From the sequence record OR413578.1: a stretch of DNA of 64,000 nucleotides, one strand, 5' to 3'. This document shows positions 25,072-38,261 of this stretch, piece by piece. Under the pieces are notes generated by a model, which did no database searches, had not been told where the DNA came from, and was given only the letters and a program-made list of their open reading frames with translations. The number at the start of each line of letters is the position of its first letter. The stretch's first letter is position 1. Made by a program: the position numbers and the translations under genes.

Positions 25072-25102
25072 CTTACCCACTCCCCTTACGGGAGTGGGTA
25101 AG
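25072..25102. terminator. bidirectional terminator
   Basis: 13-bp stem CTTACCCACTCCC/GGGAGTGGGTAAG with A- and T-rich flanks between convergent genes. Confidence 0.85.
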
Positions 25103-25104
25103 CA

Positions 25105-25596
25105 TTATTTATTTTCTTCTAACGGAACAATCGTAATCGGAGTAGGAACTTCACCGATAAACCCGCTGCTGCAGCGAAAGAATGTCATCCCTTTACCTTC
25201 GCCGGTATACGGGTTCACATCCGAAAAAGAATAAGTGGGGCTATCGTTTACGGTTTTATTAATACGGTAATAACGCTCACCTGTGGTGGTGTTAACATTC
25301 CCGTCGATTTTGCCAATTGTATCTTTAAACATCATCGGTGACTCTAATTTGCCACCGTCCCACGTTGCTACCCAGTTTGCACCCACATCCATTACTGTTA
25401 CTGACCGCGGCATCATCTGTAGATTGTCCAGAACCGGACGGTAGTCTATAAACTTCTCCTGCGTCCCTGTGCATGTATAAATCACCAAGTCGTGATTCTT
25501 TACTGGTGTGGCGCTAAATTGTCCTATGTTGCTTGGCGACTGAACACAACCGGCCAACAGGTTTATAATCGCGAATACGATAAATAGACGTTTCAT
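25105..25596 (-). CDS. putative lipoprotein
   Basis: MKRLFIVFAIINLLAG-C: basic N-region, hydrophobic core, LAGC lipobox. Confidence 0.75.
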   Translation of the reverse strand: MKRLFIVFAIINLLAGCVQSPSNIGQFSATPVKNHDLVIYTCTGTQEKFIDYRPVLDNLQMMPRSVTVMDVGANWVATWDGGKLESPMMFKDTIGKIDGNVNTTTGERYYRINKTVNDSPTYSFSDVNPYTGEGKGMTFFRCSSGFIGEVPTPITIVPLEENK

Positions 25597-25719: not shown

Positions 25720-26247
25720 ATGGCAGTCATCTCTGCAAAAGACCAACTCGTTGCGCTGTTTAATGCTGCAAACAGCGGACTGTCTAGTCCGTTAACTTCT
25801 GCTGACGTTACATTCGGCGCTGTTGCTGACTATTCACCAGCAGATTCTGGAGACACTCGCAACTCCAAACTCACCATCACTGCCACCGCGGAATCCGCTA
25901 ACTTTACTGGCGAGAAAGAGCTGCATTATACCCGCCTCGACTCATTGAACATCATCGGTGCGAAAGCAGTTACCGCTGACCAGGCAGAATGGGATACCGA
26001 TGAAGAAGTGCTTGCTTTTGTCAACGCAGATCTAATTGCCGCCGGTAAAACGGAGGATGCGTTTGCATTGTCTGAACTCACCATTTCACGCGAGGACGGC
26101 GACAGTGGTGAGAAAATCATCACTGTTATGGTGAAAGAAGGCCACATTAAATACCAGCCTGCCAGCCTTGCAGTTTATACTGTAACGCAGCCAATCGTTA
26201 AAACTGACCTGAGCACCACCAACGGTGAACTGGACGGATTCGTTTAA
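25720..26247 (+). CDS. short fibre-family protein (N-domain + NGELDGF tail)
   Basis: DTRNSKLTI..FTG..HYTRL; C-end KTDLSTTNGELDGFV. Confidence 0.75.
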   Translation: MAVISAKDQLVALFNAANSGLSSPLTSADVTFGAVADYSPADSGDTRNSKLTITATAESANFTGEKELHYTRLDSLNIIGAKAVTADQAEWDTDEEVLAFVNADLIAAGKTEDAFALSELTISREDGDSGEKIITVMVKEGHIKYQPASLAVYTVTQPIVKTDLSTTNGELDGFV

Positions 26248-26274: not shown

Positions 26275-26325
26275 TAAATAAAAGGTACCTACCTCCCTTC
26301 GGGGAGGTAGGGCCTTTATTTTCTT
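26275..26325. terminator. bidirectional terminator closing the rSAM/fibre operon
   Basis: CCTACCTCCC-TTCG-GGGAGGTAGG (26288-26311) with A-rich 5' and T-rich 3' flanks. Confidence 0.9.
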
Positions 26326-26328
26326 TGC

Positions 26329-27000
26329 TTACATGCCGAGTGACTCGGACAATGTTTTTAATCCAGTGTAATCGCGCTTTTCAGCTAACTCACGGATTTG
26401 GCGTTTGTTATCTGCCATTGCTGAGTGCAACACTTGGTCACGTGCAACAATAGCGGCCAGCAACGCTTTACATTGGGCTACTGTAAACGGACTGTGCTTA
26501 GTATTCAGCGTATCGAGCCAGTATTCTGGTGCGGTATCCGCCTGAATATATTGACCGAGGATGGTACGCGACGATTCATCGGCTTGAAAGTGACTACCTT
26601 CAAACTCGATATAACCATGGCGCTCATCTTCGTAGCGGTGGTCGAGTTCCAACAGCATCTTCTGCACGTCTTCGTAAATGTAACGTGCGGTAGATTTCAG
26701 ATTCCCGCGAATTTCGTCGAGGTCAATCTCCAGCACATTAGCAATAAACTCTTTCGTGCGTTTCAATGTGAAGTTAGCTTCAATCTCCGACATCTCATAC
26801 AGCTTCATGCGTGCCAGGGCTTCTTTATCAGACATCCCTTCAATGAGATGGTAATGGAGCAGAGCGCAAAATCCGGTACGGCCCTGATCCTGTGCCCCGA
26901 TTCGTTCCATGAAATTGCCGTGTCGGTCAATCGGCAAATCGCGCTGGAAATAACGGGCACGGATCTCTTCGTTCGTTAAGCTTTTGTCAGTAACAGACAT
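26329..27000 (-). CDS. DUF4376-domain protein (tail-fibre assembly type)
   Basis: C-half FEGSHFQADESSRTIL..WLDTLN..LL..I..RDQ.LH..K.QI resembles DUF4376. Confidence 0.6.
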   Translation of the reverse strand: MSVTDKSLTNEEIRARYFQRDLPIDRHGNFMERIGAQDQGRTGFCALLHYHLIEGMSDKEALARMKLYEMSEIEANFTLKRTKEFIANVLEIDLDEIRGNLKSTARYIYEDVQKMLLELDHRYEDERHGYIEFEGSHFQADESSRTILGQYIQADTAPEYWLDTLNTKHSPFTVAQCKALLAAIVARDQVLHSAMADNKRQIRELAEKRDYTGLKTLSESLGM

Positions 27001-27542
27001 TCGTCCTCCTCAATCAGGCCAAGTTCTAACAACAAACCGAAGTCCAGCATCTGGAAGTCCTGATCGAGGTTACCGGCCCACAACAGAGAAATGTTGTGTT
27101 GCTCTTCTTCTTCCAACTGCGGGAGCAGATGTTCTTCGAAGATTTGACGCTCTGTGTAATAGGCGTCGACCGGATTATTGGAGCGTAAGTTACGAATACG
27201 CATACGCGGGAAAGACAAGCCCAAAGCCACTAAACTTTCAGGACTGGCTTCATCAATAGAGTGACGTAGCAGTTCGATTTTGTGGCGTGGGTATGCGAGC
27301 AATCGCTTCTCAAAGCCAGGGTTGCGCTTTTCGATTTCCGCGACAGACTCGTGTCCTTTCTCAACGCAGTAGACCGGGATCATCACATTCAGCCCGTATT
27401 TAATCAACAGGCTTTGGATTTCGTCAGTGAAGTCTTCCCCTGCCACAATTGCGTGCACATTGTACAATTTGCTTTTGCGCAGAAAGCGATCGACCAAGTG
27501 CAGTTTACGCTTCGTAAAATTGTGAATCAGTATTGACTTCAT
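26976..27542 (-). CDS. hypothetical protein in the rSAM cluster
   Basis: ATG 27542 after GGAG; overlaps both neighbours, suggesting translational coupling. Confidence 0.7.
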   Translation of the reverse strand: MKSILIHNFTKRKLHLVDRFLRKSKLYNVHAIVAGEDFTDEIQSLLIKYGLNVMIPVYCVEKGHESVAEIEKRNPGFEKRLLAYPRHKIELLRHSIDEASPESLVALGLSFPRMRIRNLRSNNPVDAYYTERQIFEEHLLPQLEEEEQHNISLLWAGNLDQDFQMLDFGLLLELGLIEEDECLLLTKA

Positions 27543-28833
27543 TCTGGGCTCCGTTTTGTAATTTTTCTGCTTCAGCACGTTGACGTACACAACGTGAACA
27601 GTAGCACATGGATTTATCATGCAAATCTGACGCGCGGGTCGTACCAGTTTTCTGATACCAGTATTCTGCCGCCATCAATTTCGCAGTAGTCCAACCGCAC
27701 TGGCGACGCTCAGCGTGATACGCTTTACGGTCTTCCAGTGTACCTTCACCGTTTTCGTACGATGCTGCTGCGCAGCTACCGCAGCTGTGTTTCATCGGAC
27801 ACCCTAAACAGGTTTCTGGGTAGTTGGTGTACTGCGTTTGAATCTCTTCTAACAGCTTACCACCGTCCAGGCTCACAAACTCACGACCGACCAGTTCTGC
27901 TACAGCAGAGCGGGAAGTTACCGTGGACATGAAACGGTTACAACCGTAAATCTTGCGATCAAAGCCGAGACAGGTCATGTGCGTCAACGTACCGCAGTAC
28001 GGTTTCAGGCGTTCTGGGTCGAGACGAACAGAGTCGTCATGTAAGAGTTTGTCACGCCAATCCGGGTCCCAAGTTGCCATAAAGTTCAGGCCATCCGGGA
28101 TGATGTGCGTAATCGTGTTACGCGGGTTGGTGTGCAGACCCTTCTCAATCCAGTAGTCCATCACGTCCATCATCTGGTTCGCGATATCCAACGCCATATG
28201 GCGCGGCAGGATATCTTCGTACGTTACGTTACCAGAGATGGTACCACCGCCGGACATGTCAATTAACGATTTCATGCTGGCGGCATAGTGCGGCAATGTA
28301 TCGATCGTGAACGTCGCCTTTACGCCCAGCTCAGCGATGCCGACACTCTTCAGGTAATTGTAACCGCGTACCGCGGCTTCGTACGACCCTTCGCGCGTCG
28401 TGGTAAAGATACGATATTTGTCATGGACTTCAGGTAAACCATCGATGGAAACCCCAATAGACAGTTTGTCTTTCCAGCGCTCGATAATTTCTTTGTTCAG
28501 TGGACGGTCCAGTAGCGTACCGTTCGTGGAGATACTGAACATATACGGGCGATTGTGTTCTGCACATAACTTCTCTGCGGTTTCAAAGGCCGCCAAAAGA
28601 AGTTTAGGCTGCATGAACGGCTCACCACCGATGATATCGATGATGACTTCAACGTTCGGGATATCTTTATCACGCTCGAAACAAGCGTGGATAAAATCAA
28701 TCACGTCTGCTACTTTGTTGTTACGCGGATATTTACGCTCGTAGCAGTATTCGCAGTCCAGGTTACATGACAAGTTAGTCACAACCTGATACGTGCGTGG
28801 TGTGTACTGGATTTGCTGTTCGCTATTACTCAT
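27505..28833 (-). CDS. radical SAM/SPASM peptide maturase
   Basis: CNLDCEYC (CxxxCxxC), IGGEPF, STNGTLL, SIDG..HD..R; SPASM-type YCG..IYGCNRF..CLGCPMKHSCGSC..C. Confidence 0.92.
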   Translation of the reverse strand: MSNSEQQIQYTPRTYQVVTNLSCNLDCEYCYERKYPRNNKVADVIDFIHACFERDKDIPNVEVIIDIIGGEPFMQPKLLLAAFETAEKLCAEHNRPYMFSISTNGTLLDRPLNKEIIERWKDKLSIGVSIDGLPEVHDKYRIFTTTREGSYEAAVRGYNYLKSVGIAELGVKATFTIDTLPHYAASMKSLIDMSGGGTISGNVTYEDILPRHMALDIANQMMDVMDYWIEKGLHTNPRNTITHIIPDGLNFMATWDPDWRDKLLHDDSVRLDPERLKPYCGTLTHMTCLGFDRKIYGCNRFMSTVTSRSAVAELVGREFVSLDGGKLLEEIQTQYTNYPETCLGCPMKHSCGSCAAASYENGEGTLEDRKAYHAERRQCGWTTAKLMAAEYWYQKTGTTRASDLHDKSMCYCSRCVRQRAEAEKLQNGAQNEVNTDSQFYEA

Positions 28834-29740
28834 TGTTCGCCGCCCGTTTACGCTTAGCAGAAATTACACGGTTGATGTAGTTATACGCATCAACGCCGAT
28901 AGAACGCGCCAGGCGATTACAGCCGACTTCCAATATCTCTGGGGCGTTCTGAATTTGCTCCTGCGTACCGTCGGCGTTAAGCCACAGCACTTCACTGCAC
29001 GTGTTGCACTCGGTATCGAACATTTTACTGATCGCAAGCCCACATTCAGAATCGTTCTGCATGTTAAGGCGTTCGATATTGTCGAGTATTTTCCAATACC
29101 CGTACATGAAGTTCATGACGTGGTCTGGCGATAACGGTTTCGGCATCATCGCATCAAACAACAACGACACACCACCTGGACGGTAATGATAGATTGCTCG
29201 GTGCAGCTCGATGAAATCTTCGTACCAGCGTTTATCACCTAACTGGTCACGCGTCATCACACCCCAGGTGTAATAGTTGTCCAGCTCGTACAGCACTTCC
29301 AGCGCTTCGTGATTACCACCGTTTACAAAGTTCATAAACGGACGTTCCGACTTCTTGTAGCCGTCAATGGACACAAAGATAAGGTCGAACTGTTTCAGCA
29401 ACGGCAGATGTGATTTACGCATCTTTAAACCGTTGGTGTACATGTGATGACGGAGGTTCGGATGAGACTCCTTCAACTCGTTCACGAAGTCTTCAATCTT
29501 ACGCTGCGCTAACAGCGGCTCACCGCCCGTCCAATGAATCTCACCGATATCCGGATTCTTCTCTAAAATCGAGAGAATCTCTTCACGTTGAAACTCACGA
29601 GAAGTATCTTCTCTATCCATGTAATAAGCCCCTCCACAGAAGCTACAGTCTAAGTTACACTTAGAAGTTGCGACAACCGACAGAATTGACGGTTTGTCGT
29701 ACAGTTCAGACGAGATCCTGGATTCTACTTGATCTGTCAT
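28826..29740 (-). CDS. second radical SAM enzyme (short, degenerate auxiliary domain)
   Basis: CNLDCSFC, TGGEPLL, YTNG, SIDG; C-terminal CNTC..LNADG..GCNRL; ATG 29740 after GGAG (track start 29776). Confidence 0.88.
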   Translation of the reverse strand: MTDQVESRISSELYDKPSILSVVATSKCNLDCSFCGGAYYMDREDTSREFQREEILSILEKNPDIGEIHWTGGEPLLAQRKIEDFVNELKESHPNLRHHMYTNGLKMRKSHLPLLKQFDLIFVSIDGYKKSERPFMNFVNGGNHEALEVLYELDNYYTWGVMTRDQLGDKRWYEDFIELHRAIYHYRPGGVSLLFDAMMPKPLSPDHVMNFMYGYWKILDNIERLNMQNDSECGLAISKMFDTECNTCSEVLWLNADGTQEQIQNAPEILEVGCNRLARSIGVDAYNYINRVISAKRKRAANNE

Positions 29741-29762
29741 TGCAGGTTGCTCCAGTATATTT

Positions 29763-30650
29763 TTAAATATAATCAATGGCGAATAAAGGATCTTCGTCTA
29801 CATTAGCGCCAGGCACCAATAGCATCGGGTCGTGATAGGCAGCTAAAATTTTGTTCAGGTCGGCGTGTCTTTCGTTCAGGCGTTTCAAATCGGCCAACGT
29901 TACCGAACGACCACGAATCTCAGAAACAGCTTCTGCTTCTTCTTTCGTTAAATCCACCTTCGTTAAGAGGAAACTTACCAGCTTACTCAAATCCGCTTCT
30001 GTCGCCGGGTAATCCCCATATCGGGTTTGAACCAGGTGTTGCATCCACGGCTTACGAATACGTTTGGTGATTTCGAAATCGTCAGTCAGCGCATACCAGA
30101 CAGAACGCTTTTTATCCCACACGAACTTATAGCTATACGCCATCATGTCCGCTAAACGGGTGATGCCGAGTTCTTTATACCCCTCGATATCGATGTATGG
30201 TTCGGTGTCGAAATACGTTTCCGTATCGGCAGGTACCAGTACAAAGTAGTAAGGGAACGAGCCCAGATAGTCCGGACTCCACCAACGGCGCGCCATCGGT
30301 TTTGCTTCAAGTTCGTCAAACGGTGTAAACATCAGTTCTAAATCGACGCTGTTGTTCAAAATCCCTTCACTGAAGAAATACTTACCGTCGACTAACACGC
30401 CACGAGAGTTACCATCGCCGTTAAAGATAACGATGGCCTCTGCAACCATATCACGGATCTTAAACGTATTTTCTACGGTGTAGTTCTTCTTGTCGGTCAA
30501 GAAGCGACCACGAACCTTTGGCCACTCACCAGGAATCTGTGCAATCAGTCTGACTTTGTCAGCAAGGTGTGCACGCACTGAATCTGGGGAAGATAGATGC
30601 AGCGGGTGGTTGAATGTGGTTTTATACGCAAGATGCAAATCGTTTTTCAT
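29763..30650 (-). CDS. hypothetical protein between the Cys-rich peptides and the rSAM genes
   Basis: ORF track 295 aa; GGAG RBS; no recognisable motif. Confidence 0.75.
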   Translation of the reverse strand: MKNDLHLAYKTTFNHPLHLSSPDSVRAHLADKVRLIAQIPGEWPKVRGRFLTDKKNYTVENTFKIRDMVAEAIVIFNGDGNSRGVLVDGKYFFSEGILNNSVDLELMFTPFDELEAKPMARRWWSPDYLGSFPYYFVLVPADTETYFDTEPYIDIEGYKELGITRLADMMAYSYKFVWDKKRSVWYALTDDFEITKRIRKPWMQHLVQTRYGDYPATEADLSKLVSFLLTKVDLTKEEAEAVSEIRGRSVTLADLKRLNERHADLNKILAAYHDPMLLVPGANVDEDPLFAIDYI

Positions 30651-30672
30651 TTAATACTCCGAACGTTTTCTG

Positions 30673-30879
30673 TTATCGATTCCCCGCTCCACGGCTACAG
30701 CTTCCGCTGCAGGACCAGCTACACCCACCATTACAGTTATAGTGAGAAAGCGGTAAGCCAGCCAGGTTATTTGTGGTCGACACGGTGCCCTGGTTAGCGA
30801 TATAGTTGTTTGCCTGTGCGGTTGTAATGTAACCTTCTGCCGTAACGAGACGGTTTCGAATAGTCTTGAGACTGATCAC
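30673..30879 (-). CDS. Cys-repeat precursor-like peptide P3 (short, 4 Cys)
   Basis: GTG after GGAGG; leader homologous to P1/P2; core CNGGCSWSCSGSC. Confidence 0.8.
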   Translation of the reverse strand: MISLKTIRNRLVTAEGYITTAQANNYIANQGTVSTTNNLAGLPLSHYNCNGGCSWSCSGSCSRGAGNR

Positions 30880-30894
30880 ATAAGCCTCCGTCAG

Positions 30895-31299
30895 TTAGGA
30901 GTTAGGACCTGAACAACCACCAGAGCACGCACCTGAGCAGTTTGCGGAGCAGGATTTACCACAACCCCCAGAACAGCTGCCTGTGCACGTGCCGCTACAA
31001 CCACCAGAGCACGAAGAGCTACAGCCCGTGCAGCTGCTGCTACAGCCTGATACACAGTTTGCCGAACAAGTCGACCCACAACCACCTGTCGCAGATCCTG
31101 TGCAGCCGCCAGAGCAACTTGAGCAGCTAAAAGAACACGTACCACCACAGTCGTAGTGCGAACGACCTTGACCTGCGAACAAGTCAGCGTTATTCGTAGC
31201 TTTATTGCGAATGTAGTTTTGCACATTCGTGGTATTCTTTAGAGCGTTTGCATCGATCGTGTTTAATCGGTTATTCAGTTCTTTTAATCCAATTGCCAT
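30895..31299 (-). CDS. CxxxC-repeat precursor-like peptide P2 (20 Cys)
   Basis: AGGGGG RBS; about 50-aa leader, then a C/S/G/T-rich core with Cys mostly every 4th residue. Confidence 0.88.
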   Translation of the reverse strand: MAIGLKELNNRLNTIDANALKNTTNVQNYIRNKATNNADLFAGQGRSHYDCGGTCSFSCSSCSGGCTGSATGGCGSTCSANCVSGCSSSCTGCSSSCSGGCSGTCTGSCSGGCGKSCSANCSGACSGGCSGPNS

Positions 31300-31309
31300 T
31301 TAATCCCCC

Positions 31310-31702
31310 TTAGCGACCTGAACAGCCGCCGGAGCAGGCCCCGGAACAACTGGAAGAACATGAGCCACCGCAACCACCTGTGCAGTTACCGGTACAGCTA
31401 CTACTGCAACCACCAGAACAACCAGAGCAACCAGAACAGTTACCGCCACACGTCGAAGAACAGCTACCGATACAAGAAGCAGAACAGCTTCCTGAACAGC
31501 TCGAACAGCCGTGCGAGCAACCGTTAGAGCATGTCCAAGAACATGTCCCGCCGCAATCTAGCTGTGCTTTCGTCCAACCCCCAAATCGGTCTGCTGCATT
31601 ATGGGCTTTAGAGGCCACTTGCGCCTCGATGCGGGGGCCTGTCGCCATGTTAGCTTCGACTATCTGGACGCGGTTTCTGACGTCTTTAATAGATATCGCC
31701 AT
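31310..31702 (-). CDS. CxxxC-repeat precursor-like peptide P1 (21 Cys)
   Basis: AAGGA RBS; about 49-aa leader, then a CGGTCSWTCSNGC.. repeat core. Confidence 0.88.
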   Translation of the reverse strand: MAISIKDVRNRVQIVEANMATGPRIEAQVASKAHNAADRFGGWTKAQLDCGGTCSWTCSNGCSHGCSSCSGSCSASCIGSCSSTCGGNCSGCSGCSGGCSSSCTGNCTGGCGGSCSSSCSGACSGGCSGR

Positions 31703-31767: not shown

Positions 31768-32970
31768 TTACTTAGTACCCGCTTCAGCTTGAACATCGTC
31801 GCGCGAGGTGAGGCTGTTGTTGACGTGAACAGCAGCCTGCACAACACCTCCATACTGTTTATGGAGGTAATTCGGGTGTGGGTTATCCGCAGCCGCATGG
31901 TTCGCCAGATTCTGGTTTGCCTGCGAAATTGCGTTGGTGTTGTTTATAACCTGAGTTTTAAGACTGTTGATTTGTCCTTGCAGGTTATCAATTTGCTGTT
32001 GGAAGTCTTTGCCCTGATTCTCAAGATCCGTGACGCGCTGATTTGTTTCATTCAGTGCAGACTGAAGATCGTTAACCATCTTCTGTAATTGCAACACCAG
32101 AGAATTAAGGTTAGCTAATGCTAACGACATTTTCTGGTAATTTTGAGCAACCACGTTAAGCTGGTCGTTCCACGCGGCTAACGAAGCCACAATTGCATCG
32201 ATGCGTTGCCCCAACGCCGTGTCTGCTGCTCTTAAGTCGCCGATATCTTTGATAGTGGCGTCAATGGCAGTCTGTACACTTTGAATCAGGGCACGAATCT
32301 CCGTCTCCGTCAGGCCATTAACCTGATGAATGTCGAGATTGTGTACGTTACCTTCGGCGTTGATGTGTGTATTTAAGGCGTCGAGGAAGTCGTTTCTCAG
32401 ACCGTCCAGAATACCTTTAATTTCTTCCAGCTGTACTGCAGAGCCGGAGTTAATCGCATCTTTAATCCCCGCGAGTACGGTAATGATATACTCAAAACCG
32501 TAGATATCGCCAAGGTCTTTATACGTCGGGGCGGACGGGAACGTATCGGGTACGTTTCGAAGATCCTTGAAGTCCACCACACGGTCTTCAATTTTCAGCG
32601 ACGCAATCGCTTGTCGGATGCCTTCGACGTTCGCGGACTGAAAACCACCAACGACTTGCGCAGAGACTTCGATATCAGTAGGAATGGCCGAGTTAGTTAC
32701 CACCACACCCATGACCACTTCGCGGTTCTTGGTCATTTTCTGATATGCAGTATGTGCAAAAATCAGTTCGTAGTCTGTGCCGCGTTTGTACGGGTAGACA
32801 CCTGGTTTATTCGCAGCTGCCAAGCGGAAGGTATCCGCGTAGAAAGCTCCGTCAGGAAAAGCAAAAGCCCGGTTAACTTTACCAGAACCTAACGTAATAC
32901 GCCGTGTAACGGCGTTCGACGTTAATGTCCCGGTAAGGTCGAGCGGGTACTGATGAATGATTTCGGCCAT
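31768..32970 (-). CDS. short fibre protein: attachment-type N-domain + long coiled coil
   Basis: ATG 32970 after AGGAG; YPLDLTG..R..AFY..GTDYEL N-domain shared with the three giant genes; Q/N/L heptads; HAAADNPHPNY motif. Confidence 0.7.
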   Translation of the reverse strand: MAEIIHQYPLDLTGTLTSNAVTRRITLGSGKVNRAFAFPDGAFYADTFRLAAANKPGVYPYKRGTDYELIFAHTAYQKMTKNREVVMGVVVTNSAIPTDIEVSAQVVGGFQSANVEGIRQAIASLKIEDRVVDFKDLRNVPDTFPSAPTYKDLGDIYGFEYIITVLAGIKDAINSGSAVQLEEIKGILDGLRNDFLDALNTHINAEGNVHNLDIHQVNGLTETEIRALIQSVQTAIDATIKDIGDLRAADTALGQRIDAIVASLAAWNDQLNVVAQNYQKMSLALANLNSLVLQLQKMVNDLQSALNETNQRVTDLENQGKDFQQQIDNLQGQINSLKTQVINNTNAISQANQNLANHAAADNPHPNYLHKQYGGVVQAAVHVNNSLTSRDDVQAEAGTK

Positions 32971-33017
32971 TGCCAAACTCCTTTGATTGGGGCTTCCTTG
33001 CCCCATAGCGCTATCTG

Positions 33018-36000
33018 TTAGGTACGGAACATAAGATTGACCTGGATAATATCAGGCTGTTGACGTCCTCTCTCGTTCACCCAATCGTGCGCAATCGTTA
33101 ACGTAAGATCGTCGCCATCCCACGCCACGATCGGTGGTGGGAATAAACCCTGAGCGCCCGTGGTAACAACCGGGATTGCACCTGTCACATTCGTAAACGT
33201 GTAGCTACGACTGTTCAGAACAACTGGTGTGCCGTTGGTCTCTCCCGGCTGTGGTAAGATTTGAATCTTACTATCCGAAAGATCGGTGGTGATTGGTAGA
33301 CCCCCAGCGTCCGTGAAAAGCCAAGAGCAAATATGCTGGTTAGCTGTTTCGAGCGCTGAAGAACTTACCGCCGCGACAAATGTAAAGGTGCACGGCACGC
33401 CTGCTGGCAGAGAGTGCTGTTTGTGGTGCACGGTATGTGGTGACGGCAATAACACTTCTGGATTTTCATCAATGTTAACATCCGTACCTTCCGCCTCGAT
33501 GTTGTAGAAAAAGCCATCCACCGCCTCCCATGGGGCAACGTGAACATTAAAGGTCGTTTCTACTCCCGGTGTACCTGGGACGACGAATTTACTTTGCACC
33601 ACCACCATCAGGTTTGTTGAGGTCGGAGCGAAAGCGGGCGTTGGAATACCTACCCACTCCATACCCAACGATGTCGCTTCACTGTTCTCATCGGCCGTTA
33701 CCGTCGCAATTGTTGTAGGATGTTTCCAAAACGCCCCCGACTTGTTTGCCTGAGTAAACGCCGGCAAAGTTTTCAAGCCTTCGAAACGTTTGGACACCAT
33801 CGCTTTACCACGACTCTGTGCGTCAGATACGGTATAAAGCAACTGACTATCCAGATAGCCTTTCGTAGCATCGATCGACAAAGGACCCATCGCTTCTTTA
33901 CGCAAGGGTGCCAGTCTGCCCGTTGCTGCATCCCTTCCCACTTCCACATCATGCTTATTCTCAACCGCCGCATGTTCCAACAGTTGTTTCACCGCCCCCA
34001 ATCGCTTAGCATGTACGACGTTAGTCTCGACGACTCGCGACGAGCCCGTTTTAACATACCCGATATAGAGTTCCGTTTCAGTGTCTGGATGTTGAATCAC
34101 GTCCATTACGTACTTCGGTGTACCATTTTCTACCTTGGCGTGCAGGTAGAATGTTCGGTTCTGATGGTTTGTTGGAAATGCTGCGCTGAGGTCAATATAC
34201 CACGTAGGCAGCCTATAAGTGCTCGAGCCGAAACGCAGGTCAACTTCCTCAGTCACATATACCAGCCAACCTTCGGCTGTTTCCACACCAGCAATGACGA
34301 CCGATTCAGTCGGGCCACTAAAATTAGGAGCCGCGACAAAATCACTCGACGACATTGCGATACCACCACAATAGACGTAGTCGAGAGATGAGTTGTGTAG
34401 CATCACCTGATCACGATGAGCCAGATAAGCTGGGCTGACTGGAGTGTGGGATGGTGCCATGCGTCCAATGCCGTGTGGAGCAGAAGAACGCGTCCAGGTA
34501 CCGTTAGACAGCGTAAGACCAACACCGTAGTTAAGCGCACCCAAGTCGCCAATTTGGCGCAAGGTTAACGTGTGTGGAAGATACAACCCGAACTGAGTAC
34601 CATCTACTGACACCAGTGTAGGTTGTCCCGGCCGGCGTGTTTTTCCTCCCGTTATCTCGCCCAACGTAGCATAGTTCAAGCCATAGTCGAGGTTGTTATA
34701 GAAGTCAAACAGTGCCAATATCGCTGCTGGGAATGTTACCTGCCCGTTGCTGATTGTTGGTTTCAGTGTAAAGTAGTAGATATCCAACAAGTTAACATTG
34801 TTCACAGTACGCGTACATGCTACTTGTGCTAATGTAAGCGGCGTGGCTGTACCGATACCGATGAACCAAACGGAGAACAGTGCCTTTCCTGCGTTATTTG
34901 CGGCAAGAATATATTCCGAAGCATAACCATTCGCAGCGCCTGCCGGTGCTCCGTCGATGATCATCTGCTTCATCTTATCCCATTCAGCTTGTGACAGCGT
35001 CAATCGATCGGCATGAATCGTGAAAGTGCCGGAAACGTTGTGGTAAGGGAATGTTTCTGGTCCTGTGCAATACCAGCCGTTTAACTCTGTACCAGGCGAC
35101 GTCGGTGTAACAATGTGGCACATCTGCGACAGATTCTCATACGTGAGAGAATCTACTAGACGACGATTGTTAGTTGGGCCATACCCCGCCTTACCTGAGT
35201 AAGTGGTGTTCGGATCAAACTCAACTTCAATTGCCAAGCGGGTACGCGGCTGTGACAACCAGATAAGTCTGGAATTCGCTCCCAGAGTCAGCGGATACGC
35301 CATACCCAGCTCGTAGATAGAACCACGACCTTGGTTTAACATTACCGCACTAAAACTTCTGGCAGTGAAGTTGTAGTCGCACGACAGGTACTCGTACCAA
35401 CTCACACCGTCATCTAACGTTGTAATCGTGACATAAGGCATTAGGTCGCGATCGCCTGCATGTCCTTGCGAAACGATATACTTGTCTTGCGATGTTGCAA
35501 AGGTTCGGTTATTAGCTTGACCTTCGCCCCATTTCCAGCTCGGAATCCCAATCTCAGCGCCACCGTTATAACGAACCGTGGTAAGATCGGCCACAATAGG
35601 GAATCGATCAGCACCTTCCAGCGTTATCGTCATTGAACTACAATCAACAACAAAGCTTGACACCCATTGTTTAAAGTTAATAGTTTGCCCTGTAGTAGAA
35701 GCAAACCAAACCGTTGGAGTTAAACCAACACGAAAGTTCAGCCCATCCACACCAATCGCGTGATTACATTCCGGACCATGGACGAAATTTCGCGCACTAT
35801 TCCACTTCGCCGATGCGTCTGCGTAGATTTGTGTTACTGGCGCTACCAACACATCTGTATCAGAACGTTTCTGACCCTGACGCAAGTAGATATTATCTCC
35901 CGACGTTAACATCCCACCTGTTAACACATCCGCCACAAACGTGTTGCTACCACCCAGATTAAGTTCGTCGAGTGCGATGCTACGCATACTCACGAAATAG

Positions 36001-38201
36001 TCACCGGGGGTAAGCACAGTACGGAGCAGATAAACCCGCTCGTTGCAAACGATCAAATCGTTTGTTGATGGATCAGCAACCCATGGAGCGGTTGTAATCA
36101 CACCGGCCGCGTTACCATTTCGGTAATCGCCCAACTGAACTTTAACAACACGATGATGTTTTGCATGGTCAATGGTGCCGTCAAAGATGACCAGGTAGTA
36201 CGCACCGTCACTGCCTAAGCAGATCATTGCATCTGTACCGGTAATCACAATAGCAACCAGATTCACCCCAGGATACGCCGACATTCCAGCGGGTCGATAA
36301 CGTACGGACGTCTGCTGCATGTTCGTCAGCGTGTTGTCCGCGGTTACATCTGCGTAAGCGTAATAGATAGCCCAGTCAGCAGGGGCGTTACCGTTGGAAC
36401 CATTACGCAACGAGTAAACCTTACCAGCCTCGTAACGCGCCAAACCTTTCTGCCAGGTTTGGTTTTTGGTATACCCTTCGTAGTTCCCCTGGACTGGTAT
36501 AGGCAAGAAGTTATTGTTGCCGTACGATGATCCGCCGACAGTCCATGCGGGCAACAGCGTAGCAATCTTGTCATTCAGTGTGTCAATCTTTTGTTCAAGC
36601 AAGAAGCCCTGACGCGAAGTGACCATCTTATCCGAGGTAGTGTCGATTGCATCCCACAGTTTAGCCAAACCTGTAACAGACGTGGATGCGTACGGCACGT
36701 TATCGAGATCTGCAATGGTGTGGGTGTGCGTTGTAAGCGCTTTGCCTGATAGCACGGTGCGCAACGCATTAGTAACCGGTTTCTCCAGCGGTCCGGTATT
36801 GTCCATTTTCTCAATACCGAAATCTGCCGCGGTTAAGGTCAGATGCATCTGCCCGTTTGAATCTAATACAAACCCTTTACCATTGACTGTATACGTGTCG
36901 TCCACATATCCGTCGAGTTTGTTCTTCAAGTCAGTAACAGCTTTTTGGGAAATCGCTGTGGACGCTGCAGCGGACGCCGAAAGGTTAGTAATCGCAAACA
37001 AACCCTGCACAGTTGTGGTTGCTGCAGGCAGCTCCGCATTCATGTAAACTTTGTTTGTTTCTTTACCAGAGCCATAAATCTTCAACGTGTCGCTGGACTT
37101 GAAGTAGGCGTTTGCTGGAAGTATCTTCACCGAGGTCAAGTACATCTTAACCATATCCGGCGTAACGAGATACACGCTGTTATACACAGGTGCAAGCACA
37201 CCTGCATCATAAGCGCCCCACTTGTCACCTGCTTTACCCGAGTGAACCCAAAGCGTGTTCAGACCAGCACTGAACTCCGTAGCGATACCCGGTTCGTTGT
37301 TATCCTGGTCAGCTTTTAATACCAGCGGTTTTGTCGAGGTGATGATGAACTTCTCACCTTTCATGCTGATAACGTGACCAGACGTTGTTTGGAACGTAAT
37401 CGCGTCGTTATTCAGAACACGCATACGGCCCAGTAAATCACCCAGGGTATTATCCAGAAGCATGTCAACGTGTTTCTGTTGGATGCCACTGGTAGACATT
37501 AACGTCACTAACTCTGCCAGTGTACGTCCAAACGCTTTAGTCGCATCCACGGCCTTACCGAGCACAGGGAGTGCGCCAATGTCACCGCAGGTGTAACCAT
37601 GTGCATTTTTAATCAGGTGGTGTTGATACATTTCGTCATCAAACACCTGCTTACCGTTCTGATAAATCAAATCGGTAACTTCGGCAAATGCCTCATCCAG
37701 TTCGTGAGCGCGCTCTAAAATACCCAGACGGATATCTTCCAACGCCTTTACGATTTCATCGCGAAGAATCGCTTCTTCGAGATCTTTTGGCGGGTCGATT
37801 GGCGAGATAATCGGCGGATATTTCATCAGCTCAGACCAATCGCAGTTGCGCGGGTCTTTCATATCCGTCTTAACCAGATACTTGCCGATTTCAGAAGCAG
37901 GGATGCGATACTGCCGACCAACCGACAACAACTCGTATTCTACCTCTGTGGCGTTCAGCAGCATTATGCTGCCGTATATTGCATCGTTCTCAGCCTCGGC
38001 TAATTCCTGGAAGTAATGTCCTAAGAAATAATCAAGACCTTCTATTAACTTGCGTTTGGTTCCGGTTGTTTTATCGGTAACGGTTAACGTTAACCCGATG
38101 CGATAGAACGGTGCTTCGACGGGAATGACCGTCGAATAACGGTTCGGGTAAGTAGCGGTACTGAGGGTACCGTTAAACTGCGCCGCATCTTCTCTCGGCA
38201 T
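33018..38201 (-). CDS. giant tail fibre/baseplate protein (~1727 aa)
   Basis: ATG 38201 after AGGAG; shared N-domain (APFY..GLDY), H..KNAH, ATTTVQGLF, THTHT, ASTSVTGLAKL fibre motifs. Confidence 0.75.
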   Translation of the reverse strand: MPREDAAQFNGTLSTATYPNRYSTVIPVEAPFYRIGLTLTVTDKTTGTKRKLIEGLDYFLGHYFQELAEAENDAIYGSIMLLNATEVEYELLSVGRQYRIPASEIGKYLVKTDMKDPRNCDWSELMKYPPIISPIDPPKDLEEAILRDEIVKALEDIRLGILERAHELDEAFAEVTDLIYQNGKQVFDDEMYQHHLIKNAHGYTCGDIGALPVLGKAVDATKAFGRTLAELVTLMSTSGIQQKHVDMLLDNTLGDLLGRMRVLNNDAITFQTTSGHVISMKGEKFIITSTKPLVLKADQDNNEPGIATEFSAGLNTLWVHSGKAGDKWGAYDAGVLAPVYNSVYLVTPDMVKMYLTSVKILPANAYFKSSDTLKIYGSGKETNKVYMNAELPAATTTVQGLFAITNLSASAAASTAISQKAVTDLKNKLDGYVDDTYTVNGKGFVLDSNGQMHLTLTAADFGIEKMDNTGPLEKPVTNALRTVLSGKALTTHTHTIADLDNVPYASTSVTGLAKLWDAIDTTSDKMVTSRQGFLLEQKIDTLNDKIATLLPAWTVGGSSYGNNNFLPIPVQGNYEGYTKNQTWQKGLARYEAGKVYSLRNGSNGNAPADWAIYYAYADVTADNTLTNMQQTSVRYRPAGMSAYPGVNLVAIVITGTDAMICLGSDGAYYLVIFDGTIDHAKHHRVVKVQLGDYRNGNAAGVITTAPWVADPSTNDLIVCNERVYLLRTVLTPGDYFVSMRSIALDELNLGGSNTFVADVLTGGMLTSGDNIYLRQGQKRSDTDVLVAPVTQIYADASAKWNSARNFVHGPECNHAIGVDGLNFRVGLTPTVWFASTTGQTINFKQWVSSFVVDCSSMTITLEGADRFPIVADLTTVRYNGGAEIGIPSWKWGEGQANNRTFATSQDKYIVSQGHAGDRDLMPYVTITTLDDGVSWYEYLSCDYNFTARSFSAVMLNQGRGSIYELGMAYPLTLGANSRLIWLSQPRTRLAIEVEFDPNTTYSGKAGYGPTNNRRLVDSLTYENLSQMCHIVTPTSPGTELNGWYCTGPETFPYHNVSGTFTIHADRLTLSQAEWDKMKQMIIDGAPAGAANGYASEYILAANNAGKALFSVWFIGIGTATPLTLAQVACTRTVNNVNLLDIYYFTLKPTISNGQVTFPAAILALFDFYNNLDYGLNYATLGEITGGKTRRPGQPTLVSVDGTQFGLYLPHTLTLRQIGDLGALNYGVGLTLSNGTWTRSSAPHGIGRMAPSHTPVSPAYLAHRDQVMLHNSSLDYVYCGGIAMSSSDFVAAPNFSGPTESVVIAGVETAEGWLVYVTEEVDLRFGSSTYRLPTWYIDLSAAFPTNHQNRTFYLHAKVENGTPKYVMDVIQHPDTETELYIGYVKTGSSRVVETNVVHAKRLGAVKQLLEHAAVENKHDVEVGRDAATGRLAPLRKEAMGPLSIDATKGYLDSQLLYTVSDAQSRGKAMVSKRFEGLKTLPAFTQANKSGAFWKHPTTIATVTADENSEATSLGMEWVGIPTPAFAPTSTNLMVVVQSKFVVPGTPGVETTFNVHVAPWEAVDGFFYNIEAEGTDVNIDENPEVLLPSPHTVHHKQHSLPAGVPCTFTFVAAVSSSALETANQHICSWLFTDAGGLPITTDLSDSKIQILPQPGETNGTPVVLNSRSYTFTNVTGAIPVVTTGAQGLFPPPIVAWDGDDLTLTIAHDWVNERGRQQPDIIQVNLMFRT

Positions 38202-38221: not shown

Positions 38222-38261
38222 AATAAAACGGAGACCGCCCTCCCAATAACGGAAGGGCGGT
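38222..38261 (-). terminator. possible terminator/attenuator between fibre genes
   Basis: ACCGCCCT..AGGGCGGT stem followed on the minus strand by CTCCGTTTTATTA; a second hairpin lies at 38268-38295. Confidence 0.5.

Follow-up and report, generated by a model that had tools for sequence, protein, structure and literature searches.

A putative radical-SAM maturation module for fibre-type Cys-repeat proteins in the Salmonella jumbo phage SPLA1a

Gene content of the locus

The window analysed here (64,000 nucleotides of OR413578.1) belongs to Salmonella phage SPLA1a, an SPN3US-like jumbo phage. Directly behind the tail-fibre genes lie three cysteine-repeat genes (P1, P2 and P3), which are missing or mis-framed in public records, followed by genes for an accessory protein, two radical-SAM enzymes (rSAM-2 and rSAM-1) and two further proteins. 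All genes are on the minus strand, and in the order of transcription the features are:

38234..38261 (-): terminator-like hairpin upstream of gp168 (12 pairs, 8 of them G-C, followed by a T-rich tail)
33018..38201 (-): gp168-like tail-fibre protein of the phiKZ gp131 paralogue family, first gene of the unit
31768..33006 (-): gp167-like virion tail/fibre protein with a coiled coil (412 aa)
31310..31702 (-): P1, Cys-repeat protein of 130 aa (49-aa N-terminal part and 81-aa core with 21 Cys)
30895..31299 (-): P2, Cys-repeat protein of 134 aa (50-aa N-terminal part and 84-aa core with 20 Cys)
30673..30879 (-): P3, short paralogue of 68 aa with a GTG start (48-aa N-terminal part and 20-aa core with 4 Cys)
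29763..30650 (-): gp165-like accessory protein (295 aa)
28826..29740 (-): rSAM-2, radical-SAM protein (304 aa from the ATG)
27505..28833 (-): rSAM-1, radical-SAM/SPASM protein (442 aa)
26976..27542 (-): gp162-like protein (188 aa)
26329..27000 (-): gp161-like DUF4376 protein (223 aa), last gene of the unit
26288..26311 (both strands): bidirectional terminator-like hairpin closing the unit (10 pairs, 7 of them G-C)

The initial annotation had described three tandem Cys-repeat genes with 21, 20 and 4 Cys, two radical-SAM genes and three further genes in a tail-fibre operon, and this observation was confirmed in every detail. Cys residues occur mostly at every fourth position: 17 of 20 Cys-Cys spacings equal 4 in P1, 15 of 19 in P2 and 3 of 3 in P3. 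Each protein has a Cys-free N-terminal part of 48–50 aa and a core made almost only of Cys, Ser, Gly and Thr, and each gene is preceded by a Shine-Dalgarno-like sequence (AAGGAAG, AAGGGGGA and GGAGG). The intergenic gaps are 10–65 nt, or the genes overlap by 8–38 nt. The only strong terminator-like hairpins on the minus strand are those listed above, just upstream of gp168 and just after the DUF4376 gene, and the unit is transcriptionally contiguous with the fibre genes. P1 is not annotated in OR413578.1, and SPN3US 'gp166' is a 111-aa ORF in another frame of the P2 stretch. The annotated coordinates of the gp168-like gene come from OR413578.1 and SPN3US.

Several lines of evidence show that the Cys repeats are not a chance feature. 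P1 and P2 contain 16.2% and 14.9% Cys, whereas no other of the 73 ATG-ORFs of at least 100 aa in the window exceeds 7%. In orthologues from genera in which rSAM-1 is only 62–66% identical, 19–21 of 21 (P1) and 19–20 of 20 (P2) Cys positions are kept. The DNA is not a recent tandem repeat, as TRF found only short arrays of 76–90% matches.

Family assignment of the proteins

The proteins were assigned by profile searches (Pfam, NCBIfam, PHROG) and by structure comparison. Both enzymes are radical-SAM proteins, with PF04055 scores of 58.7 and 55.6 bits against a cut-off of 29.5. The best NCBIfam hits of rSAM-1 (CNLDCEYC) were the CXXX-repeat peptide maturase TIGR04115 (125.6 bits, E = 3e-36) and the ranthipeptide maturase PapB (113.6 bits, E = 1e-32), and its closest solved structures are those of the thioether-forming CteB (5wgg) and anSME. 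In an alignment of 25 relatives, some of which are cut at the N-terminus, C23, C27 and C30 of the SAM-cluster motif are kept in at least 90%, and the seven C-terminal SPASM Cys (C280, C298, C342, C345, C351, C354 and C379) are invariant. rSAM-1 did not cluster with cofactor or nucleotide families; such clustering had been named beforehand as an outcome that would speak against the peptide-maturase reading. rSAM-2 (CNLDCSFC) has the CX3CX2C motif, GGEPL and only three conserved C-terminal Cys, and is thus twitch-like with one auxiliary cluster at most. It is homologous over its full length to the 263-aa rSAM of a Deferribacter prophage module (locus L009; E = 2e-14).

P1 (E = 1e-40) and P3 (E = 2.7e-24) match PHROG 6085, and the peptides hit the CXXX-target repeat model TIGR04114 at or just under its cut-off (19.6 bits for P1 against 20). 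None of the curated cut-offs of these peptide and maturase families is reached, and the system is therefore a relative of TIGR04114/04115 rather than a certified member.

The gp165-like protein, the conserved third component of the module, matches PHROG 8030 (E = 3e-150); its AF2 model (pLDDT 89) gave no PDB or BFVD match apart from its own orthologue. The gp162-like protein matches PHROG 7988, and its AF2 model (pLDDT 90.5) is a partial (beta/alpha) barrel, which may be a cluster-less radical-SAM-like core; the best Foldseek TM matches were SkfB (6efn, prob 0.99, TMq 0.54) and ChlB, but with E-values of only about 1e-2, and hhalign against the rSAM-2 family gave a probability of 30%. The gp161-like protein matches PF14301 (E = 1.4e-9, 38.8 bits against a cut-off of 25), PHROG 8169 and, weakly, the tail-protein PHROG 2837. 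The gp167-like protein matches PHROG 2163, virion structural protein (E = 1e-108).

Published mass spectrometry of SPN3US virions (PMC5105663, Table S4) showed gp167–171 to be tail-associated: gp168 is present in virions and lost in tailless particles, and gp167, a homologue of phiKZ ORF134, was detected only in tailed particles. The enzymes and gp161–165 were absent from the virions. The phiKZ gp131–135 proteins form the fibre base (PMC13250141).

Conservation and genomic context of the module

The order fibre, gp167, P1, P2, P3, gp165, rSAM-2, rSAM-1, gp162, gp161 is kept in Seoulvirus, Wellingtonvirus, Derbicusvirus, Machinavirus and Erskinevirus, and the module is conserved across at least five phage genera; a short third paralogue is present in all five other genera read. 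Peptides and enzymes co-occur in every related genome examined. Among the 80 best IMG/VR relatives of rSAM-1, 77 have an adjacent CXXX protein on the same strand; in 62 of these 77 loci there are CXXX proteins longer than 160 aa, and in 41 the longest is over 300 aa.

The N-terminal part of P1–P3, read as a leader in the initial annotation, is not RiPP-like. Its last ~17 residues and the first Cys turns are homologous to the junction (N-A/N-x-x-L-x-G-x5-Y-x-C-x-G-x-C-S-W-S/T-C) that joins the shaft to a C-terminal CXXX-repeat tail in tail-fibre proteins of 247–568 aa from unrelated phages and prophages, and the junction could be aligned between the window peptides and six full-length fibre proteins. 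Distant rSAM-1 homologues (about 38% identity) lie next to tail genes, with the CXXX tail at the C-terminus of fibre-like proteins of 302, 568 and 258 aa. The Cys-tail fibre genes are followed by a gp165-like gene and a large SPASM radical-SAM gene, and in most modules also by a small radical-SAM gene (loci L024 and L026 show only the large one). Homologues of gp165 sit between the Cys-tail fibre gene and the rSAM genes in loci L009, L012, L023, L024, L028, L173 and L174; the match to the 250-aa protein of L009 has E = 2e-9. Distant gp165-like proteins found by a whole-library profile search are again preceded by a CXXX tail and followed by two rSAMs.

In the P2-like tail modules L023 and L028 the order is baseplate J, I, Cys-tail fibre, gp165-like and rSAM(s), then sheath and tube (supported by PHROG assignments for L028), and the module occupies the fibre/chaperone slot. 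The 401-aa protein of L028 hits tail-fibre PHROGs in its N-terminal part and the P1–P3 family PHROG 6085 at residues 270–357.

Possible function of the Cys-repeat proteins

The initial annotation had inferred that a lytic jumbo phage carries a complete RiPP-like peptide-maturation pathway in its late structural transcript, and this interpretation is only partly supported. The radical-SAM assignments, the similarity to CXXX-repeat maturases, the co-occurrence of peptides and enzymes and the contiguity with the fibre genes all agree with it, and, as it had supposed, a literature search yielded no functional study of such a system. The reading as a complete pathway for a RiPP natural product is not supported: no leader peptidase or exporter was found, nor an RRE in rSAM-1, whose cluster motif starts at residue 23, whereas CteB aligns only from its residue 106. 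The evidence points to maturation of fibre-type structural proteins rather than of a diffusible peptide.

We consider the most likely explanation, with moderate confidence, to be enzymatic (probably thioether) cross-linking of fibre-type Cys-repeat proteins. The analysis itself establishes that P1, P2 and P3 are real, conserved genes transcriptionally contiguous with gp168 and gp167, that their N-terminal part ends in the junction found in tail fibres of unrelated phages, that a gp165-like protein and a large SPASM enzyme accompany this tail everywhere, and that the enzymes and gp161–165 are absent from SPN3US virions, in which the neighbouring fibre proteins are present. The chemistry and the virion location are inferred. 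In this view, rSAM-1 would act after translation in the cytoplasm, abstract hydrogen from residues between the cysteines and close Cys-S-to-carbon (sactionine or ranthionine-type) bridges, one small ring per CXXX turn, which would turn the Gly/Ser-rich tail into a rigid, protease- and redox-resistant rod. rSAM-2, with a single auxiliary cluster, would add a second set of links or another modification; gp165 would take the place of the missing RRE and chaperone by holding the junction segment; and gp162 and gp161 would be lineage-specific helpers. The matured mini-proteins would then join the fibre apparatus, possibly as a P1/P2/P3 three-chain unit through their N-terminal helices. Thioethers would give a covalent stabilisation that, unlike disulfides, can form in the reducing cytoplasm where phages assemble. 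A precedent is CrpC, a SPASM radical-SAM enzyme that installs thioethers on CrpA, a Cys-rich protein rather than a peptide (PMC13692751).

Some observations do not fit easily with this model. Thioether formation is inferred only from the nearest characterised relatives, which are 25–30% identical. P1–P3 lack any recognisable fibre shaft or baseplate-attachment domain, and gp167 shows no similarity to the shafts of the full-length Cys-tail fibres. The cores are not more variable than the rest of the module, which is unlike most receptor-binding tips. In addition, three paralogous precursors sharing an N-terminal region is also the typical layout of a multi-precursor RiPP cluster, and short CXXX peptides of 58–88 aa occur next to related enzymes in Firmicutes genomes.

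In principle, the N-terminal part could be a true leader that is cut off, with the cross-linked cores released at lysis to act outside the virion, for example on competing bacteria, on other phages or on host defences. The layout of three precursors with a shared N-terminal region and variable cores, the similarity of the enzymes to peptide maturases, the short CXXX peptides beside related enzymes in Firmicutes and in some viral contigs, and the absence of the enzymes and accessory proteins from virions are compatible with such a diffusible RiPP. However, we regard it as unlikely, since profile searches (NCBIfam, Pfam, PHROG) revealed no protease, exporter or immunity gene in or beside the unit, rSAM-1 has no RRE, and neither the homology of the 'leader' end to the shaft-tip junction, nor the tail-fibre slot of the module in other phages, nor the length of most viral CXXX proteins fits this reading. 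Alternatively, the modified proteins could act transiently as a template, chaperone or ruler for assembly of the large gp167–170 fibres and then be discarded, as are tail-fibre assembly proteins and C-terminal intramolecular chaperone domains. The module takes the place of the fibre-assembly chaperone gene in P2-like tail modules, it is followed by a DUF4376 gene, and a gene annotated as a tail assembly chaperone lies about 2 kb beyond the end of the unit. P1–P3 have not been reported in any virion proteome, but this absence is uninformative because the genes were not in the search databases; the cores also have no tryptic sites. The assembly-aid reading is less likely still, as in full-length fibres the CXXX tail is the C-terminal end of the fibre itself, no cleavage signal was found, and covalent cross-linking is a costly investment for a part that is thrown away.

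Two other possibilities appear very unlikely. One is a superinfection or DNA-entry barrier analogous to the bacterial HXS defence, in which two radical-SAM enzymes and a small protein mature a repeat-bearing effector that blocks incoming phage DNA (PMC13128918). The architecture has the same four parts (a SPASM rSAM, a smaller rSAM, an accessory protein and a repeat protein), and rSAM-1 and rSAM-2 give sub-threshold hits to HxsB (E = 5e-21) and HxsC (E = 6e-12). These scores are far below the cut-offs (75 against 370 bits and 45 against 268 bits, respectively), P1–P3 have no signal peptide and no peptidoglycan-binding domain, a PADLOC search gave no family hit beyond generic radical-SAM N-termini, and the linkage to tail genes is left unexplained. 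The other is that the CXXX tails bind metal ions or Fe-S clusters without covalent modification, the radical-SAM enzymes acting on something else. Some tail-fibre needles hold iron through His repeats. The Cys density of 15–16% is comparable to that of metal-binding proteins, and many Cys-rich archaeal proteins are predicted to bind metal cofactors (PMC13692751). The two roles are not exclusive, because unlinked Cys could still bind metal; however, the best family hit of rSAM-1 is the CXXX-repeat maturase, and the linkage of the repeats with SPASM peptide-maturase-type enzymes is near-obligate (77 of 80 loci).

Gene content and annotation of the Cys-repeat unit

The region is 100% identical to Salmonella phage SPLA1a (OR413578.1, genus Seoulvirus) and 98% identical to the model jumbo phage SPN3US; window coordinates equal SPLA1a record coordinates minus 124000. 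The initial annotation had described three Cys-repeat genes followed by a 295-aa gene, two radical-SAM genes, a 188-aa gene and a DUF4376-type gene, and all of these features were found on the minus strand, so that the observation held in full:

31310-31702, minus strand: P1, 130 aa, 21 Cys, Cys-Cys spacing of 4 in 17 of 20 cases
30895-31299, minus strand: P2, 134 aa, 20 Cys, spacing of 4 in 15 of 19 cases
30673-30879, minus strand: P3, 68 aa, 4 Cys, spacing of 4 in 3 of 3 cases
29763-30650, minus strand: gp165-like protein, 295 aa
start (ATG) at 29740, minus strand: rSAM-2, 304 aa, CNLDCSFC
next, minus strand: rSAM-1, 442 aa, CNLDCEYC
26976-27542, minus strand: gp162-like protein, 188 aa
last gene, minus strand: gp161-like DUF4376 protein

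P1, P2 and P3 each have a Cys-free N-terminal part of 48-50 aa, a core made almost only of Cys, Ser, Gly and Thr, and a Shine-Dalgarno-like sequence upstream. The Cys content of P1 and P2 is 16.2% and 14.9%, and no other ATG-ORF of at least 100 aa in the window exceeds 7%. A recent tandem-repeat expansion of the DNA as the origin of the cores was rejected, because TRF found only short, imperfect arrays. The gp161-like protein scores above the gathering threshold of DUF4376 (PF14301; 38.8 bits against 25 bits, E = 1.4e-9).

Gaps between the genes are 10-65 nt, or the genes overlap. The only strong terminator-like hairpins on this strand are located at 38261-38234, just upstream of the fibre gene gp168, and at 26311-26288, just after the DUF4376 gene. 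The genes gp168, gp167, P1, P2, P3, gp165, rSAM-2, rSAM-1, gp162 and gp161 thus form one plausible transcription unit. A scan for sigma-70 promoters found fewer sites than in shuffled sequences (10 against 20), which is expected for a phiKZ-like phage with its own RNA polymerases and is therefore uninformative.

None of the three Cys-repeat genes is annotated in the SPLA1a record, which shows an empty stretch of 1.1 kb. In SPN3US the only feature at this position (record 143409-143744), 'gp166', is a 111-aa ORF in another frame of the P2 stretch, and a tblastn search with P1 showed no annotated feature under the match in most Seoulvirus records. Low-complexity Cys-repeat genes seem to be systematically under-annotated, as a Cys peptide of ∼70 aa was also missed by gene callers in one of the distant loci described below (L174).

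The module occurs in the same order in five further genera or groups: Erwinia phage Wellington, Phobos and Cronobacter CR5 (Derbicusvirus), Machina, Asesino (Erskinevirus), and metagenomic relatives. Each has a P1-like, a P2-like and a short P3-like gene. Where rSAM-1 is 62-66% identical and gp165 43-45%, P1 keeps 19-21 of 21 Cys positions and P2 keeps 19-20 of 20, which also settles which frame is coding. According to the CoreGenes table of Thomas et al., gp163-165 have homologues in phiEaH2 and CR5 but not in phiKZ, while gp167 matches phiKZ ORF134.

Radical-SAM enzymes, accessory proteins and their closest relatives

Both enzymes carry a CX3CX2C cluster motif, the Cys of which are kept in at least 90% of relatives, and both pass the Pfam Radical_SAM model (PF04055; 55.6 bits for rSAM-1 and 58.7 bits for rSAM-2, against a cut-off of 29.5). 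In rSAM-1, seven C-terminal Cys (C280, C298, C342, C345, C351, C354 and C379) are invariant in 25 relatives down to 31% identity, in agreement with a SPASM-type motif that binds two auxiliary 4Fe-4S clusters. The Pfam SPASM model itself gave no hit, and the assignment rests on the Cys pattern, although the PapB model aligns through this region. rSAM-2 keeps CX3CX2C, GGEPL and TNG but has only three conserved C-terminal Cys; it does not show the SPASM feature, can hold one auxiliary cluster at most and is twitch-like. The two enzymes are only distantly related to each other (26% identity over 144 residues, E = 2e-4). Cofactor- or nucleotide-modifying radical-SAM families (MoaA, QueE, NrdG, viperin) were considered and rejected, because these hits cover only the N-terminal cluster half and score below the peptide-maturase families.

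The best of 64 NCBIfam families for rSAM-1 is the CXXX-repeat maturase TIGR04115 (rSAM_Cxxx_rpt; E = 3e-36), with a score of 125.6 bits in two stretches, far below the cut-off of 350 bits. The other criterion of this family, a CXXX-repeat target protein encoded next to the enzyme, is fulfilled in the window and in 77 of the 80 best viral relatives. P1, P2 and P3 hit only the corresponding target model TIGR04114 (tSAM_targ_Cxxx), at 19.6, 17.1 and 13.7 bits against a cut-off of 20; P1 misses by 0.4 bit, and the periodicity itself is plain. This target/maturase system (with Pfam PF27846) is defined bioinformatically, and no experimental study of it was found. The phage unit differs from it by the second radical-SAM enzyme, the gp165-like protein and the tail-fibre context.

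The second family is PapB (113.6 bits, E = 1e-32, aligned over residues 22-357 of rSAM-1), followed by many other peptide maturases, and the best solved relatives are CteB (5wgg) and anSME. PapB (freyrasin) and CteB (thermocellin) are SPASM enzymes that make repeated Cys-to-carbon thioether rings in ranthipeptides and SCIFF peptides; in PapA the motif is Cys-X3-Asp. In the phage proteins the acceptor residues would be Ser, Gly, Thr, Asn or Ala, not Asp or Thr in a defined motif, and the substrates have 20 or more Cys and are, in relatives, whole fibre proteins. The cluster motif of rSAM-1 starts at residue 23 and CteB aligns only from its residue 106, so that no N-terminal RRE was found. In CrpA/CrpC of Methanococcus voltae (PMC13692751, 2026) a SPASM enzyme installs thioether (ranthionine) links on a Cys-rich protein with a C-terminal repeat region, and a conserved N-terminal part of ∼47 residues is shared between paralogues. 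The enzyme family is a different one (TIGR04463, for which rSAM-1 scores 57.6 against a cut-off of 525), the repeats are 17 residues long with C-X-X-Q/D, and the setting is archaeal and cellular without a link to virions. The HXS anti-phage system (HxsA-D; PMC13128918, 2026) also has four parts, a SPASM rSAM, a second rSAM, a small protein and a repeat-bearing protein substrate. rSAM-1 scores 75.1 bits with HxsB and rSAM-2 45 bits with HxsC, below the cut-offs of 370 and 267.9 bits; the HXS repeats are His-Xaa-Ser rather than Cys-based, the substrate is exported to the periplasm and has a peptidoglycan-binding domain, and the system is a bacterial defence rather than a phage structural module. 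Covalent hardening of a virion part by a cross-link made in the cytoplasm is seen in the HK97 capsid chainmail, but those links are autocatalytic Lys-Asn isopeptides, whereas dedicated Fe-S enzymes would act on fibre-type proteins here.

The model of gp165 is confident (pLDDT 89), but it has no structural neighbour in PDB or BFVD other than its Asesino orthologue, and neither an RRE nor a known chaperone could be recognized. The family is tiny (49 of 1.84 billion representative proteins), and its distant members share only the C-terminal helical part. Two distant members that we looked up are again followed by two rSAMs; one is preceded by a '...YYRCSGCSWTC...' tail and the other by the uncalled Cys peptide of ∼70 aa. 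The gp162-like protein was considered as a reductant partner such as flavodoxin, but it is instead predicted (pLDDT 90.5) to form a partial (beta/alpha) barrel. The best TM matches are the rSAM cores of SkfB and ChlB, with E-values of only about 1e-2 and an hhalign probability of 30%. It has no CX3CX2C motif and may be a cluster-less rSAM-like core, possibly a degenerate third rSAM; one of the distant loci (L012) has three real ones.

Cys-repeat tails on fibre-like proteins of other phages

A protein search with rSAM-1 found homologues of about 38% identity outside the SPN3US-like group. In a Deferribacter abyssi prophage (L009) a GpJ-type tail protein is followed by a 302-aa protein with classic fibre repeats and a C-terminal tail of 29 Cys, and then by a 250-aa protein, a 263-aa rSAM and the 385-aa SPASM rSAM. 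In a 213-kb phage contig (L010/L011) a 568-aa fibre-like protein, for which PF27846 (tSAM_targ_Cxxx_rpt) is on record, ends in a 30-Cys CXXX tail and is followed by further genes including two rSAMs. In a third locus (L012) a 258-aa fibre-like protein with a 13-Cys tail is followed by a 277-aa protein and three rSAMs. The 250-aa protein of L009 is homologous to gp165 (E = 2e-9) and the 263-aa rSAM to rSAM-2 over its full length (E = 2e-14). The junction between shaft and tail in these proteins is the same as the end of the 'leader' of P1-P3: an Asn-Ala/Asn-x-x-Leu-x-Gly segment and a Tyr are followed by C-x-G-x-C-S-W-S/T-C. The homology of P1-P3 to fibre proteins is limited to this junction and the CXXX tail, and no shaft or attachment domain was found.

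A scan of IMG/VR with a profile of rSAM-1 relatives returned 429 confirmed contigs, of which the best 80 were read. Under a strict criterion (at least 10 Cys, at least 40% of spacings equal to 4, same strand) 77 of 80 have an adjacent CXXX protein, and two of the three exceptions are cut at the contig end. The longest CXXX protein per locus has a median length of 303 aa and a maximum of 574 aa, with up to 92 Cys; only 15 loci have solely short ones of 160 aa or less. Two contigs (L023 and L028) hold P2-like tail modules with the order baseplate J, I, Cys-tail fibre (384 or 401 aa), gp165-like and rSAM(s), then sheath, tube and tape measure; the module therefore sits where such phages keep the fibre and its chaperone. 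PHROG searches confirmed the baseplate, sheath and central-fibre-J assignments. The L028 fibre hits tail-fibre families in its N-terminal part and the P1-P3 family (PHROG 6085) at residues 270-357, and the neighbouring 242-aa and 263-aa proteins hit the gp165 family (PHROG 8030). A second class, with an N-domain of ∼110 aa, a different junction and enzymes about 26% identical to rSAM-1, also lies among baseplate and fibre genes.

In representative bacterial genomes the closest relatives of rSAM-1 are at most 31% identical, and only about 10 of 80 loci carry CXXX ORFs, some of them short and RiPP-like. Close relatives of rSAM-1 therefore appear mainly viral. Extreme CXXX proteins were found in viral contigs (L032 and L035; 480 aa with 92 Cys) and in bacterial MAGs of Margulisiibacteriota/Termititenax (L093-L095; 661-667 aa with 112-122 Cys), which share an N-domain and junction ('...hleevrqvvdd...narC') with a further viral contig (L034).

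In the SPN3US proteome table (PMC5105663, Table S4) gp167-171 are present in virions and absent from tailless particles, whereas gp161-166 are never detected. The enzymes and helpers therefore behave as non-structural maturation factors. The table does not bear on P1-P3, which were not in the database searched and whose cores have no tryptic sites. In phiKZ the gp131-135 paralogues, to which gp167 and gp168 belong, build a hetero-hexameric fibre base with a helical bundle (PMC13250141).

Proposed role of the module and features of the surrounding region

The most economical reading is that the unit is a maturation system for fibre-type Cys-repeat proteins. The existence and conservation of the genes, the shared junction and the recurrent partner genes follow from the sequence comparisons; the chemistry, the substrate handling and the location of the products are inferred. 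In this view rSAM-1, and probably rSAM-2, would install covalent links in the CXXX tail, gp165 would supply substrate handling, and the products would belong to the fibre apparatus. Thioether formation is inferred only from PapB, CteB and the CrpA/CrpC case. In SPN3US-like phages the shaft would be reduced to about 50 residues and there are three paralogues; a three-chain unit is a tempting but speculative idea. The possibility of a split fibre, in which gp167 plus P1 derive from one ancestral Cys-tail fibre, was rejected because gp167 has no significant similarity to the shafts of the L009 or L028 fibres (E > 0.3). This lack of similarity, together with the absence of attachment domains in P1-P3, also speaks against the fibre reading.

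The proposal of the initial annotation, a RiPP-like peptide-maturation pathway, was partly supported. The multi-precursor layout and the short Firmicutes peptides fit a RiPP, but no peptidase or transporter family was found in any gene of the unit, no RRE was found in rSAM-1, and the gp165 model has no RRE-containing neighbour. A diffusible RiPP is kept as an unlikely alternative, and a transient assembly aid as a still less likely one. Metal binding by the repeats and an HXS-like entry barrier (PMC13128918) are both improbable, the latter having no PADLOC support.

In a broader and more tentative reading, tailed phages of many lineages, including jumbo myoviruses, P2-like and lambda-like prophages and gut phages, would use dedicated radical-SAM enzymes to weld the C-terminal CXXX-repeat ends of their tail fibres into thioether-laddered rods, and in SPN3US-like phages these ends would be free-standing mini-fibre subunits. 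This would be a previously unrecognized class of enzymatic post-translational modification of virion structural proteins, and much of what databases call a 'CXXX-repeat RiPP' system would really be phage fibre maturation. If the fibre reading is right, Fe-S radical enzymes take part in building a virus particle, of which we know no example and found none in our searches. It would explain how phages obtain disulfide-like covalent rigidity in a reducing cytoplasm, and would give a function to an uncharacterized database family (TIGR04114/04115, PF27846, PHROGs 6085 and 8030). It would also flag three conserved genes that are missing or mis-framed in the public records of a model jumbo phage, to which every proteomic search of SPN3US so far has been blind, and would offer RiPP enzymologists substrates with more than 20 (window) and up to 122 (relatives) potential cross-link sites in one chain. 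Literature searches on SPN3US and radical SAM, CXXX repeats, phage RiPPs, tail fibres with radical SAM and the family accessions found no description of the module. The types of enzyme and substrate are known; the second rSAM, the gp165 family and above all the tail-fibre context are new.

Next to the unit, the following features were noted:

25072-25102 and 26288-26311: two strong bidirectional terminator-like hairpins (13 and 10 pairs)
25720-26247, plus strand: small gene flanked by these hairpins, the gp160 equivalent
25105-25596, minus strand: 163-aa ORF, the SPN3US gp159 equivalent

SPN3US gp160 is an abundant virion protein (Table S4). The 163-aa ORF sits between the lysis/tail-chaperone genes and the module and has a signal peptide and a lipobox-like 'LLAGC' at its N-terminus; it may be a phage lipoprotein. 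Several records of SPFM phages (LR535901-LR535912) match the region only as about 40 short pieces at about 99.5% identity covering 46% of it, with fragmentary rSAM and gp165 proteins, which suggests many indels in those assemblies rather than real gene loss. Contigs of about 240 kb carrying the rSAM-1 of this phage are deposited as Salmonella enterica or E. coli assemblies; SPN3US-like phage genomes evidently travel in bacterial isolate sequencing sets, through a carrier state or contamination.
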